Shown: piece by piece, positions 7,112 to 48,449 of the stretch
Layout: the number at the start of each line of letters is the position of its first letter
Position numbering within the stretch: the stretch's first letter is position 1
Assembly: GCF_006345805.1 (NCBI RefSeq)
Contig: NW_021835936.1
Coordinates: forward strand, 1 to 52,982
Length of the DNA: 52,982 bases
Direction of reading: 5' to 3'
Source of the DNA: Octopus sinensis
Lineage: Eukaryota
Made by a program: the position numbers and the translations under genes
The notes under the pieces: model-generated
What the model saw: the letters and a program-made list of their open reading frames with translations, nothing else
Database searches by the model: none
Told to the model about the DNA's origin: nothing

Positions 7112-7180
7112 ATCTCATTTATGCTGGAAAGGTATGAGAAAGCGCCATCAAATTTTTGTAAACGGTTGTAGCTCAAATTT
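7112..7180 (-). CDS. Single-copy LRR exon (69 nt) NLSYNRLQKFDGAFSYLSSINE
   Basis: T-rich tract, then ctttcAG|AAATTTGAGC...AATGAGAT|GTatgt; phase 2/2; LSYNxL motif; in frame with the 9845 exon. Confidence 0.85.
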
Positions 7181-7624
7181 CTGAAAGAATCAAAGATAAG
7201 TTAAAATACGTAAAAATAAAAACAAACTGTTTTATACCGTAAAATACTTTCTAAATTTCTTTTTTCTCAAATGCAGGGTATCCGTTTAGAGACAGTTTAG
7301 AAACAGAAAAAGACAGTGTGCGTGTGTGTGTGTGGGTGCGTGTGCACACACACACACACACACACACACACACGCGCATACTGTCTTTTTCTCTCTGTGT
7401 CTGTCTGTGCTATTTTCTCTCTCTTTTTCTCTCTGTCTCTCTCTCAATCTCTGTGTCACACACTTTTGTGTTTCGCTCACCCCATCAATGTGCTGATGGG
7501 GTAAAAGAAAACGCATACACACACATACACACAGACACACACACACAGTGTGTCTTCCTCAATGTTTCTGTATGACACTGTCTTTCTCTCTCTTTCTCTC
7601 TCTATCTGTGTCTCCCTGTGTGTC

Positions 7625-8172
7625 TCTCACTGCAACTCTTTTCAATTGCAATTCCTCGCACAAAACAATCGTCGGCAGGAGCACTACGACACATAACAGT
7701 GGTATCAACAAGCTTCTCAATTGTTCGATGACTGTTCTCCAAGATGAGTTCATGAACTTTTGTGATGTTTTCATTCTTTCGGGAAGTCATTGGTCGCCCT
7801 GAACATAGTTATTTTTCAAGCGACAAGTGACCGTTCCTGGAGTGTGGAAACAACTTGTAAACTTGTGCTTTGCTCCTGGTAACGTCCTTGTCAGTTGTGT
7901 CAAATATGACAATTGTTTCGGCTGCCGCTTTCCCAGCAGAAATCAGAATTTCCCGGATGCACGCTGTTCCTTCGTTCAGCAGCCATCGCAAAAAAATCAA
8001 TAACACAGGAGAAGCACTGCAAAACAACGATACATCACGTGGCAGTACGAGTCTAAATGACAATGCCGGTCGGCACACTGATGTCTGATAGTGGCTTCTA
8101 GCAGAGTAAGACTGAACTACAACTGGTTTAACCCAACAGAGATAATTTCGGTTACTTTTAGGTACCTCATGT
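7625..8172 (-). mobile_element. Mariner transposon 5-prime remnant (N-terminal HTH region)
   Basis: Frameshifted EQRAS.KF.FLLGK / AAET..VYK / SGRPMTSRKNENITKVHELILE..RTIEKLV / EELQLKRVA; TIR-like GAGGTACCTAAAAGTAACCGAAATT at about 8145-8170. Confidence 0.8.
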
Positions 8173-8364
8173 ATAATATATATAGATATATATATATATA
8201 TATATATATATATATATTATATATATATATTATATAATATATATATATATTATATATATAATATATATATATATATAAATATAATGTAGGATAACATTTT
8301 TTCGGGAAAAACATTTTATCAATGGCCAGCATATCAAAAATACCTTTAAAGGTTACGTTTATAA

Positions 8365-8630
8365 ATAATTTACAAGATAAGGGCAAAAGAAATATTTTGT
8401 AATGCCAAATATGCCGAAAAAAAGACAAAAATTGTCAATAACCATTATAATTTATGCGTCTCGAAACAAATCGATAGAATTTTCAAAAATTCGTTATTAC
8501 CGTATTGGTCCCAATTTCGGGGATAATTCATAAGAATTTTCACTTCATCAGCGATAAATTTTAGTCTTTTTGTCTTTCTTTCGGCATATTTGACATTAGA
8601 ATTTTCCTTTGCCCTTATCTTGTAAATTAT
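8365..8630. mobile_element. Internally deleted MITE with terminal inverted repeats
   Basis: ATAATTTACAAGATAAGGGCAAA..AATATGCCGAAA is mirrored at 8575-8630; same family as the 33206-33782 element. Confidence 0.8.
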
Positions 8631-44529: not shown

Positions 44530-45590
44530 TTGTTTAACAATTAAAAGAGGTAAAAAGAATAAATTAGAATTAGGAAGGTAATATCTTTTCCATATGAACA
44601 AGAAGAAATATATGTGAATTTATATGAAGAGGTAGGGAAAAAGATTTAAGCTCAGGAACACAGATACACATACACACAAATATGAATTATATACATATAA
44701 ATTTATATATATATATATATATATATATATATATATATATATATATATATATATATATATATATATATATACAGAAACACACTCTAGAGGGAATAAAGGA
44801 GCTACCCAATTCACTTTAAGTAGCGCTGCCACCGATGAGATTGACTCTTGTCCGCTTCTCCAACGGTAAACACGAGGATTATTGTCATTTTTGCATGATT
44901 TAATGACACTGTCCGACATATGGGCGAATGAGCGTAGGTGCAACGTGGCAACGGAAAACAATTTGGTGTTGATGAATCAGGTGATATGCGTTCTCTTCGA
45001 TTCTAAGCAGATATTTGCGGCCTTTAGGGAACACTACGTGCATCAGTTTGTGGAGGTTAGTGGTCCATTGACTGTGAAGCTCTTAACCGTCTACGTAGAC
45101 GGCTTGCGGCAACATTCGAATGAAACTACGCCGTTCTACAAATGGTGGAAAATTGTTGCGGTATTCGAGATGCCGGGTTAGATGTCGCCATGGCTTGAGG
45201 ATCAGCCTTACGCAGTTTAAAATTAATTGCCATAAATAGCAGTGAGTGCAATGGCAGGTGTCTACAACAAAGGGAAGAAAAATAAGATAATTCTTAGCCC
45301 TGAAAAAAGCTGGGTGTCACGGCAATGTTGAGAAAGACCTCGAAAAAAATGTATTTGATAATAATTTGAGACCCGTAATTAGGCTTAATGCCGAAGATTC
45401 CATATCAAAATCATCTAACCACAACAGGTTCCTGCTTGCACAGTACATGACAGACAGAATGTGTAACAAATGCGTTTCCAATGAAATTCTAATTTTGTGT
45501 TAGTCAAATGCCAACTGTTGGCGCCTGCACTGAAGGAAGCCGGATTCGGTCCTGTTTCCAGAGGCTAGATCGCAGTAACCTACAACACAT
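44530..45590 (+). mobile_element. Ancient Tx1-like ORF2 remnant (paralog of 37830-38870)
   Basis: Colinear paralog with the same motifs. Confidence 0.65.
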
Positions 45591-46589
45591 TTTGCTTGTT
45601 GGAACCATTCAAATGAACTGGAACAAAATGACCTGGCGAACAGGCTATTAGCAGAGAGGTAGTGTGGTGGAGAATACAGAACGATTGAAGAGAGAGAGAT
45701 AATACGATCGAACTCTCATCGAAGCCTTAAAATTCCATTTAAAATGACGGTGAGGGTGGAGTGAGAGAGAGATCCACACCACCCAAGTAAATGTAGTGAG
45801 AAGTGGGGGAATACTAAACTGCACCTGTAAGCTGAGTCATACCGTGGAAGATGGAGTACTTTTAGTCGTAGTCTTGACCTAACTTTCTTTACAACATCTG
45901 ACATAATGGCATGGACGATCCTACAATAACTTGAGTAGTTTATGACTGGGAGTCACATGAGTTTCAGCTTCGTCAGTCAACAATATTGGCCTCAGAAGCA
46001 GGTATTCCTCAGTCAATAGCGGTCACTTACTATCCATCATCTAGAAGACAGTGAAATACCTGGGGAAGGTATTTAAATTTAACCGGAATGAAACATAATC
46101 TAATTGTGAAAGCAACAAGGATTCTGAAAGGCAACTATCTACAGTGGCCATGTGATGTCTCCCGGTAATTTTAAGACCTGGAGTTAAAAATAGAGCATCC
46201 GCCATGGATCATTTGGCAGTTCTCCGTACATGACATTTCAATATCCTCATTGAAGAGAAGGAAGCGATTTCCTGTGAAAAAGGCTGGGATACGTAGTCCT
46301 GAGTGGAAAATACAATTTGAAGCACTTCATAAGCAGCCTCAGAGAAATCTTGGTTCTCTGTGATTAGATGTTGCGTTAGTGAGGCTTTCGGTACGAGGGC
46401 AATACATCACGGAATTGGAGTGCGGTGGAGGATTTCTTGGCTTCACATGTATTTGATGAAAAACGTGATTTGGCTAGCGCCACAACACCTCACTATGACA
46501 ATTGGCAAGAAAGATTTAGTAGGAAGATAAGGAAATAAATGCGGTGTTTGGGGATGACCATAAGGATGTTCAAAGAATATGAGTTTGTT

Positions 46590-48070
46590 TTAAAACTTAA
46601 AATTAAATACACAGTATTTTACGTAGGATATGGGCGGTTCCCATTAGGGCTATCTTTTGAGTTGCTGCCATTTTGGGTTTTCCTAGTATCTGAGATAGGT
46701 ATGATTCAGGCCTTTTGCTATAATTCATCGGGCAACTATGACAACAGGCATTGTTTTACTTCCACATTTTGCTAATTTCTATTTCAAGATCTTTACACTT
46801 GCTCAGTTTTGTAGGTTTTGACAGATACTTTTATGTCGATTGGGACAGTTTTTTGGTTTTGTGATGAGGCATGTTTTTTCCTGTAGTTTTTCTATATATG
46901 CCTGGTCTATTCGCATCTATCTTTCTGTCACTTTGAATAGCGAAGTTCTAGAGGATAAGATGCGATCATCTTCAAGAACTGGAGTGTGTTCGTGTCCCCA
47001 AAAGATTGTATCATGTGGCACGTCTATGTTTTTGCAAATTAACCAGTGAATATGATGTGCTGCTCAATCATGCCTGTTGAGATATTCTGTATGCACAAGA
47101 AGACTGCACATGGAGACAACATTATCAATGGTTTCATTTTGTTGTTTACATACAAGACATGCTGGGTGACTGCCTTTCTTTAATATGGTTGTTTCTTGTA
47201 GGTAGGCCTTGATATTGAGCTGCTATATTAAATCCGTCTGTGTCTGATTTTAAATTAGAAGACACTAACCATTGATGGGTAATGGCTTTATCCACATCGG
47301 TACCATTAGCTCTCTTTGGGTATTTGCCATTGAGATGTTTTCTTTGTCATTTATCTGTAAGAATATCTAAATCATATTCTTTGCATGTACTTTCATTCGT
47401 TTAGCTTTTTTGTGCTTGCTTCTAGTACGTCTAATTCTCGGGTTTGTTGTATTTGGAATTCACTTAGATATTCCTTTGCATGCTTTGTTACTTTGTATGA
47501 CACTTTCTTGTTTTCGTGCTTCGAGACAAGTTTTAACATCCAGTCATGAGAGTTGTTTAGGTAAGTCTTTCGGTCAAATGTAGCAAAATTCATTGTTAAT
47601 TCCAGTTGTAAATGTTACGCCCACCTTCTTTTCTTCGCAGGTAAAATCGTTCTACATCTGCTTTAGGGTGGTGCATTCCACGCATTGTCTACAACTTTCA
47701 TATTTTTCTGTCAAGATTACATATTTCAATCATTGAGCAGTTAATGATATTGAAACTGTAAGTCACGCCTGGTAGTAGCAAAAGTACCCATCTCCTCGAT
47801 TCTGTTTCTTGCATTCAGCTCTGTCTTGAATATTGCTTTTAACCTGATATAATATTCTATTCTGATCCTTTCCCTCATCACTGAATATTTGATCATGTCC
47901 ATTTCAAATACCGATATGTACATGTATCTCTCCGCTGGTTCTAATTCCTTTATGACACTCTGCGGAATGTTTCTGTCGTTTTTCCTTTGATAAATGTAGC
48001 TTTTGCTCATTTATCGAGGTAAAATTACAAAGTGATATCATCACAGAATTGTTTAATATTTCCTGCCCAA
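46590..48070 (-). mobile_element. Decayed R4/Dong remnant, paralog
   Basis: Colinear with 23775-25220. Confidence 0.88.
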
Positions 48071-48377
48071 GACGAAACATTGACGGACTATATATTTATC
48101 CACATATTCAAGGCACTAATGTACATATATATATGACTATATACGCACTTTACACAATATACCAAACAGTGATGTAGAACACAAAGACTTATGTAAATGC
48201 ACATCGTCACACACAAACACGCTCAACTCACACACACTCACATACATATATATATAGAAAGAGATGATGTGAGTTAGGGAAGGGCAAAAGAAGGTTAAGA
48301 AAGAAAGATGGAAAGATATTAAATTTGAGGAAATATATACTCAGGGATATATTATGAACAAGACTGGTTCAACTTAC

Positions 48378-48449
48378 AAACGCCATATTCTCGGAAGATT
48401 TGCATACAATCCATTTTCAATTTTCACGATTGAATTATTGGATAGGAAT
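48378..48449 (-). CDS. LRR exon (72 nt) FLSNNSIVKIENGLYANLPRIWR(L)
   Basis: ctttcAG|ATTCCTATCC...TGGCGTTT|GTaagtt; phase 2/2; open frame. Confidence 0.88.

Follow-up and report, generated by a model that had tools for sequence, protein, structure and literature searches.

An octopus-specific 'group 3' expansion of adhesion G-protein-coupled receptors (GPCRs) has been described (Ritschard et al. 2019, PMC6408891). It comprises co-localised genes that bear marks of positive selection, with expression in axial nerve cord, suckers and skin; of its 22 members, 5 contain leucine-rich repeats (LRRs) and one has a Death domain. Here, we analyse a stretch of 52,982 nucleotides from Octopus sinensis (contig NW_021835936.1 of assembly GCF_006345805.1, positions 1 to 52,982; hereafter, the window), the minus strand of which carries nine small exons that encode the LRR ligand-binding arc of an octopus gene. 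These exons probably form the central LRR solenoid of an LRR-bearing adhesion GPCR from an octopus-lineage family, assembled by duplication into an array of exon cassettes. The complete protein would comprise, in order, a signal peptide, LRRNT, at least nine LRRs, LRRCT, a Cys-rich three-finger-like domain, a HormR-like stretch, GAIN/GPS and a class-B2 seven-transmembrane (7TM) domain. By its features rather than by phylogeny, the gene fits group 3. The likeness lies in the Octopus lineage, the pairing of GPS with an adhesion-type 7TM domain, the presence of LRRs in some members and the clustering of the genes; moreover, relatives share one Octopus vulgaris chromosome (13.7-20.8 Mb), and a single group 3 member has a Death domain, as does the octopus paralogue P0132. 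The published survey, on the other hand, used annotated 7TM proteins and does not cover this locus, its exon-per-LRR units, the Cys-rich domain or interspecies differences in LRR copy number.

The gene also resembles ADGRA2 and ADGRA3 (GPR124 and GPR125), in which an N-terminal LRR block with LRRCT is followed by GAIN/GPS and a class-B2 7TM domain; its relatives match the Pfam family GAIN_ADGRA3, and NCBI has given the name ADGRA3 to one paralogue. ADGRA proteins contain four LRRs and carry an Ig-like domain and HormR between LRRCT and GAIN, whereas the octopus gene has at least nine LRRs and a 10-cysteine 'CCxxxLCN' three-finger-like domain, and no Ig match was found in the paralogues scanned. 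Because the three-finger-like domain stands in place of the Ig-like domain, the gene appears to be ADGRA-like and not a strict ADGRA orthologue.

The exon layout recurs in other genes. In gonadotropin-receptor genes, according to the account of Koo et al. 1991 cited in PMC11378527, each LRR occupies one exon of ~72 nt and all introns are in phase 2; these LGRs differ in having a rhodopsin-class 7TM domain and a hinge region, without GAIN/GPS, and no such domain or hinge is seen in the octopus gene. Brown-alga ROCO genes with shuffled LRR exons (PMC11378527; Zambounis et al. 2012) likewise have 72-bp, phase-2 exons of one LRR each; there, too, duplication in tandem occurs within the gene, some positions are diversifying and LRR exons are alternatively included. 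These genes, however, encode cytosolic LRR-ROC-COR GTPases of an unrelated lineage, and the resemblance is one of genetic mechanism only. Because the one-LRR-per-exon, phase-2 layout is common to other LRR genes (PMC11378527), it is not diagnostic. The first-pass annotation of the window, which had likened the exons to LGR ectodomains, was correct as to the layout.

When the minus strand was scanned for AG-N(66-78)-GT segments with an open frame after a one-base skip, the nine exons (Table 1) were returned, and each lies exactly where the first-pass annotation had placed it. Every exon consists of 1 nt, 22 or 23 codons and 2 nt, which puts the introns in phase 2/2. All nine acceptors show a pyrimidine-rich tract with a terminal cag, and the donor is gtaagt in eight exons and gtatgt in one. 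The split codons, which read TT|A, AT|A or GT|A, fall at LRR position 4. In the joined peptide they specify Leu or Val; Ile is found there in some of the O. vulgaris copies, and also where S9 meets the LRRCT exon. Joined together, the exons make 645 nt that encode a stop-free peptide of 214 amino acids (aa) with nine consecutive LxxLxLxxNxIxxIxxGxF repeats, as first proposed. This peptide matches Pfam LRR_8 over seven stretches (E=1.4e-82, 271.8 bits) and so shows the tandem 24-residue LxxLxLxxNxL repeats of the 'typical' extracellular LRR domain; its best protein matches are Octopus models. Because the minus strand of the window holds 329 stop-free AG-N69/72-GT candidates, splice and reading-frame criteria alone are nonspecific; specificity comes from the LRR signal and from agreement with octopus gene models. 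Strict LRR regular expressions missed them because each repeat is split across junctions. No further or degenerate LRR exon copies were found in the window by tblastn, and Rfam and tRNA scans of the window returned nothing. From S1 to S9, the introns measure 6963, 6936, 8739, 9773, 2356, 2176, 1086 and 2664 nt.

Table 1. Features of the window, by position in the window. L003 is O. vulgaris chromosome OX597842.1; P0002 is an O. sinensis RefSeq model; LINE, long interspersed element.
Feature	Position	Strand	Size and type	Sequence	Remarks
LRR exon S1	48378-48449	-	72 nt, type A	FLSNNSIVKIENGLYANLPRIWR	
LRR exon S2	41343-41414	-	72 nt, type A	NLSNNSIVKIENGSFANLPKLEY	
LRR exon S3	34335-34406	-	72 nt, type A	LLYNNAIVKIENGSFAKLPNLRE	
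LRR exon S4	25524-25595	-	72 nt, type A	DLSSNAIVKIENGSFANLPNLGE	O. vulgaris orthologue L003:87270-87341
LRR exon S5	15679-15750	-	72 nt, type B	ILVNNKIAIIEHGSFVGLTKLYK	O. vulgaris orthologue L003:97155-97226, flanks 98% identical
LRR exon S6	13251-13322	-	72 nt, type B	NLANNKIAIIQHGLFEGLTNLYK	intact in window
LRR exon S7	11003-11074	-	72 nt, type B	KLANNKIAIIEHGLFEDLTNLYK	present in P0002
LRR exon S8	9845-9916	-	72 nt, type B	NLANNKIAIIEHGSFEGLTNLER	present in P0002
LRR exon S9	7112-7180	-	69 nt	NLSYNRLQKFDGAFSYLSSINE	O. vulgaris orthologue L003:106770-106838
Type-A tandem array	21973-52982	-	~7-9-kb units, 88-95% identical		self-blastn; reaches window edge; carries S1-S4 and co-duplicated LINE fragments
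Type-B tandem array	8888-17066	-	~2.3-kb units, 87-91% identical		self-blastn; carries S5-S8
LINE-type remnant	51886-52982	+			
LINE-type remnant	29884-31800	+			
LINE-type remnant	18145-19248	+			
LINE-type remnant	2857-3615	-			
LINE-type remnant	12-533	+			
(TATC)n microsatellite	48994-49207				
(TATC)n microsatellite	42559-42714				
(TATC)n microsatellite	34975-35246				
(TATC)n microsatellite	26140-26393				
(ATT)n array	5612-5845				
(ATT)n array	1874-2214				
(ATT)n array	809-1052				

The exons sit in tandemly duplicated exon-plus-intron units of two types, a feature that the first-pass annotation had missed. Type-A exons bear the signature 'NN[AS]IVKIENG' and type-B exons 'NNKIAIIEHG', and the flanks of the two unit types align at ~70%, which suggests a common origin. 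Within the type-A array, positions 23727-30144 match 46550-52982 at 95.1% identity over 6.5 kb, with a LINE as part of the match. The introns do hold fragmented LINE reverse-transcriptase open reading frames with RVT_1 and zf-RVT domains; however, because the tandem units match one another LINE included, what had been described as transposon debris is largely intron copied with its exon by segmental duplication. One LINE remnant retains an open frame of 638 aa in which both RVT_1 and zf-RVT are present, and the LINE copy near 29-31 kb recurs at 51.9-53 kb within a type-A unit. A (TATC)n microsatellite lies ~550-1150 bp upstream of each type-A LRR exon, and the window contains long (ATT)n arrays. 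The array was probably built by repeated unequal crossover, which duplicated symmetrical one-LRR exons (phase 2/2, 72 nt) and the introns attached to them in two generations of units (type A, ~7-9 kb; type B, ~2.3 kb), with LINE insertions copied along. Since each module is frame-neutral, units could be gained, lost or skipped with a change in LRR number but no break in the frame.

Positions 1-30962 of the window are 99.2% identical to two unplaced O. sinensis contigs of GCA_006345805.1, VCDQ01005335.1 (L001) and VCDQ01010816.1 (L002), and the window is ~97% identical to the O. vulgaris chromosome L003. The near-identical L001 and L002 each encode P0002 and are probably haplotigs or a redundant assembly of the locus. 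P0002, named 'egg-6-like, partial', opens with S4 and continues with S7 and S8, all at 100% aa identity, and then with an LRRCT-cap exon ('DLRNNTDMMCGCQLP...') at L001:33273-33440, 2.4 kb past window position 1 (left edge). This exon ('DLRNNTDMMCGC..'), which we take as LRRCT, has no Pfam LRRCT match. Three further exons of P0002 encode a 10-cysteine domain with a terminal CCRDNLCN, and since the last of them ends at a gtgagt donor without a stop codon, the model is incomplete at its 3' end. S9 is the homologue of the family's conserved last repeat, '..N[QR][IL]Q.[YF].DGAF..L..I..[IV]DL..N..C.C', which stands directly before LRRCT and is found in the paralogues P0124, P0127, P0132 and P0155. 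The final AT of S9 and the T that opens the LRRCT exon make an Ile codon, giving the in-frame junction '..SSINE-I-DLRNN', and P0002 probably omits this genuine exon.

At the upstream side, the O. vulgaris model P0001 opens with an exon that encodes a signal peptide and LRRNT, ends in phase 2 and is followed by type-A LRR exons. Its CxC..C segment after the signal peptide scores 20.7 bits against Pfam LRRNT, below the cut-off of 25.8. Neither this LRRNT exon nor the unique sequence of the first O. vulgaris intron was found in the window. The nearest match of S1 is V1, the first LRR exon of O. vulgaris, from which it differs at 6 of 72 nt. Window positions 6328-6396 (minus strand) match the last coding exon of P0001 ('RMPQKLKVQIVAFIVSTAVHAFL', followed by the stop) at 100% aa identity; the implied acceptor there is TG, not AG, so this last exon is probably an annotation artefact. 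The gene extends past the window on both sides, as the first-pass annotation had supposed, with the LRRNT exon upstream and the LRRCT exon beyond window position 1. Its description of the gene as hidden holds in part: S4, S7 and S8 are in P0002 and related upstream LRR exons are in the O. vulgaris model, whereas S1-S3, S5, S6 and S9 are in no gene model found.

Downstream of the array, the next O. vulgaris gene call (899 aa, Pfam GPS and 7tm_2) starts at L003:109392, which is an in-frame ATG within the LRRCT exon 109344-109511; on OX597842.1 the call runs downward from ~21,611,717. The octopus paralogues P0132 (1283 aa), P0149, P0155 and P0178 each carry LRR_8, the LRRCT/Cys-rich region, GPS and 7tm_2 in a single chain, and P0132 has a Death domain in addition. 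P0178 comes from Logan contigs of 4.0-4.4 kb that encode 1155 aa, which means that these contigs can only be spliced, intron-less mRNA. NCBI names the full-length paralogues ADGRA3, ADGRG6 or GPR126-like. In an O. bimaculoides paralogue locus, which NCBI splits into P0121 and a downstream 568-aa GPCR, the Cys-rich, HormR-like, GAIN, GPS and transmembrane exons are colinear with P0132. Precomputed GAIN_ADGRA3 (PF26588) matches, some marked weak, are present in the relatives P0292, P0294, P0295, P0297, P0299, P0301 and P0303. Taken together, the O. vulgaris orthologous locus and the full-length paralogues make it very probable that the exons encode a 7TM receptor ectodomain, as had been proposed. 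All nine exons would then be joined in one mRNA, and this mRNA would run on into the GPS-7TM exons. Annotation of the flanks recovered a signal peptide and LRRNT (in O. vulgaris), a putative LRRCT and, in the next O. vulgaris gene call, GPS/7TM; the LDLa module that the first-pass annotation listed among those to look for was not seen there.

The matches of the Cys-rich domain are weak but consistent (Activin_recp, E=0.039; Toxin_TOLIP family, E=0.015; LYPD1 and ACVR1 in the PDB, E ~0.5-1), and they weakly suggest a three-finger-like fold. AlphaFold2 modelling of LRRCT plus this domain from an 8-sequence alignment gave a mean pLDDT of 34. A profile of LRRCT plus the Cys-rich region was searched against 1.8 billion representatives; as LRR columns were also in the profile, generic giant LRR proteins made up most of the 150 matches listed, and whole-profile matches alone were used. 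No Ig or HRM Pfam match at E<=1e-4 was found in P0132, P0155, P0149 or P0178, and the HormR-like motif in P0121 is a visual assignment only.

The same evidence bears on the identity offered by the first-pass annotation, namely a rhodopsin-class LGR (glycoprotein-hormone or relaxin type) or a GRL101-type receptor, to which the exons would supply the ectodomain. Although the one-LRR-per-exon, phase-2 layout is also that of gonadotropin-receptor genes, GPS is followed by 7tm_2, not 7tm_1, both in the orthologous locus and in every full-length relative; P0001 has no LDLa match, the O. vulgaris signal peptide directly abuts LRRNT, and the nearest named proteins are adhesion GPCRs. This identity is extremely unlikely and we abandon it in favour of the adhesion GPCR.

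On OX597842.1, many fragments of family genes with LRR, GAIN, GPS and 7tm_2 occur at 13.7, 14.9, 15.5, 18.8, 20.7 and 21.6 Mb (L005-L009, L003), mostly annotated as separate short genes; the LRR adhesion-GPCR family appears to be systematically fragmented in current annotations. In O. bimaculoides (CM046629.1), the GPS motif of a family member that lies upstream of P0121 is interrupted by an in-frame stop, 'CFY*HLTSF' (L004:3102-3254), which suggests that this neighbour of P0121 in a tandem GPCR cluster has been pseudogenised.

The sequence variation among the cassettes is concentrated at particular codons. Among the four type-A copies in the window, exons differ by 10-24% and flanking introns by 5-9%; 20 of 72 exon columns are variable vs 73 of 574 upstream-intron columns (Fisher p=0.002), and S1 and S4 differ at 17 of 72 sites, where ~5 are expected from the ~7% divergence of their flanks (p ~2e-5). 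None of these four exons contains an indel. Across 12 type-A copies from both species, codons x2 and x3 reach a nucleotide diversity (pi) of 0.64, above all 358 intronic 6-nt windows (maximum 0.35), followed by x5, x24 and x12, with x8 also diversified. In contrast, N9, I11, K13 and E15 show zero nucleotide variation, L6, I14, L22 and P23 are invariant in amino acid, and hardly any variation is seen in the splice flanks (pi 0.05 and 0.008). Alignment of these 12 copies leaves the exon free of gap columns, vs 73 of 432 columns in the upstream intron, and all 19 LRR exons (nine of O. sinensis, ten of O. vulgaris) keep exact length, an open frame and canonical splice sites. Pairwise ratios of nonsynonymous to synonymous divergence (dN/dS) are 0.8-2.2 for type A and 0.3-0.8 for type B. 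For S4, S5 and S9, which have clear O. vulgaris orthologues, the proportions of nonsynonymous (pN) and synonymous (pS) differences are 0.056 and 0.114, with neutral divergence at ~3.25%.

In LRR proteins, the LxxLxLxxN strand forms the concave, ligand-facing sheet. The most variable positions, x2, x3 and x5, would lie on this strand and hence on the ligand-facing surface. The pattern may come from faster substitution, or from exons resisting the gene conversion that homogenises introns; either would imply selection on the encoded surface. We propose that positions x2, x3 and x5, together with x8, x12 and x24, have diversified while scaffold residues and splice signals were kept.

The two species also differ in the number of cassettes. 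O. vulgaris has eight type-A exons vs at least four in the window, and a single type-B exon (the S5 orthologue) vs four in both O. sinensis assemblies, in addition to the S9 orthologue. It lacks a 4.4-kb segment that corresponds to window positions ~13916-9556 and carries S6-S8 (L003 ~104093-104487). Because type-B units differ from one another by 9-13%, more than the species do, loss or assembly collapse in O. vulgaris is likelier than gain in O. sinensis.

Several findings weigh against the reading of the array as part of a functional adhesion-GPCR gene. In both older O. sinensis contigs (L001:17594-17668, and L002), S6 has a 1-bp deletion (TTCAACATGG to TTC-ACATGG). Over the 12 type-A copies, exon-wide diversity is 0.167 vs 0.108 in the intron, and 27% of intron windows reach the exon value; the greater divergence of exons than introns is significant in the window copies but not exon-wide in the larger set, and is not robust; the localised hypervariability is relied on in its place. 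The stop-free state of the exons would be only mildly improbable under neutrality (P ~0.01-0.08). Protein searches returned no transcript-derived protein that matches the gene's LRR or Cys-rich parts. The link from LRRCT to 7TM at the locus itself rests on a gene-table coordinate in O. vulgaris; it is an inference, as searches that used the Cys-rich region or a GAIN-7TM pseudo-protein built from the paralogue locus did not return the 899-aa protein but O. vulgaris relatives elsewhere on the same chromosome, at 13.7-20.8 Mb. Finally, existing annotations split the locus, and several paralogue models stop after the Cys-rich domain. S5 of L001 and L002 ends in AAT (Asn) where the window has AAG (Lys), and this difference, like the S6 deletion, is either polymorphism or assembly error.

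Some of these points could be read as signs that the array is a decaying relic, its exon copies passive passengers of segmental duplications and out of use. The exons are no more conserved than the introns, S6 is frameshifted in the other O. sinensis assembly, O. vulgaris is without S6-S8, and protein searches found no transcript for the gene itself. A relic is nevertheless quite improbable, since the nine exons of the window and the ten of O. vulgaris retain length, frame and strong splice sites with near-invariant splice flanks, variation is concentrated at the canonical ligand-facing LRR positions while N9, I11, K13 and E15 are without nucleotide variation, and three of the nine exons are in a RefSeq model. 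The first-pass annotation, which held the gene to be live, had named equal divergence of exons and introns as one observation that would tell against it: exon-wide, the two do not differ significantly in the 12 copies, yet hypervariability is localised at x2 and x3. The coding array looks intact, which is consistent with a live gene.

The remaining points bear on whether the exons belong instead to a stand-alone secreted or lipid-anchored LRR plus three-finger-like protein ('decorin-like' or 'chaoptin-like'), with the GPS-7TM gene a separate unit. The RefSeq models of the paralogues P0124 (593 aa), P0125 (525 aa) and P0127 (456 aa) stop soon after the Cys-rich domain, in keeping with such a protein, as does the division of the O. 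bimaculoides locus between P0121 and a GPCR. On the other hand, P0002 terminates at a splice donor without a stop, the O. vulgaris GPCR call starts within the LRRCT exon, both halves occur together in full-length paralogues, one of them mRNA-derived, and the tail of P0121 resembles read-through into a microsatellite-rich intron. We regard a separate secreted protein as unlikely; short isoforms could coexist with a receptor form.

Returning to the adhesion GPCR, a paralogous O. sinensis gene suggests how its cassettes might be deployed. The predicted isoforms P0125 and P0274-P0278 (XP_036369232 to XP_036369238), of 525, 501 and 477 aa, are distinguished from one another solely by entire 24-residue LRR cassettes that are present, missing or replaced, so the frame-neutral design is exploited at least in predicted isoforms. 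Cassettes might likewise be used combinatorially, by inclusion, skipping and mutual substitution, to yield many adhesion-GPCR ectodomains in the manner of Dscam or protocadherins, for neural or chemotactile recognition, with unequal crossover shifting the repertoire fast between sibling species; we offer this as a speculative and rather doubtful extension.

The gene is probably a poorly annotated, newly described case of a known octopus adhesion-GPCR family, and its one-LRR-per-exon, phase-2 construction was already known from other genes (PMC11378527). Current annotations represent it by an LRR protein called 'partial egg-6-like', an 'IGFALS-like' protein whose last exon is doubtful, and a GPCR starting at an internal Met. 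Because current models fragment the gene, octopus adhesion-GPCR counts and domain inventories, such as LRRs in 5 of 22, may be underestimates. Cell-surface recognition genes have undergone notable lineage-specific expansions in octopuses, and this locus shows at the nucleotide level how such a receptor builds and remodels its binding domain through frame-neutral, intron-carrying LRR cassettes, which diverge at their ligand-facing residues and differ in number between two species only ~3% diverged. If true, combinatorial use of the cassettes would allow one locus to give rise to many ectodomains with different binding surfaces.

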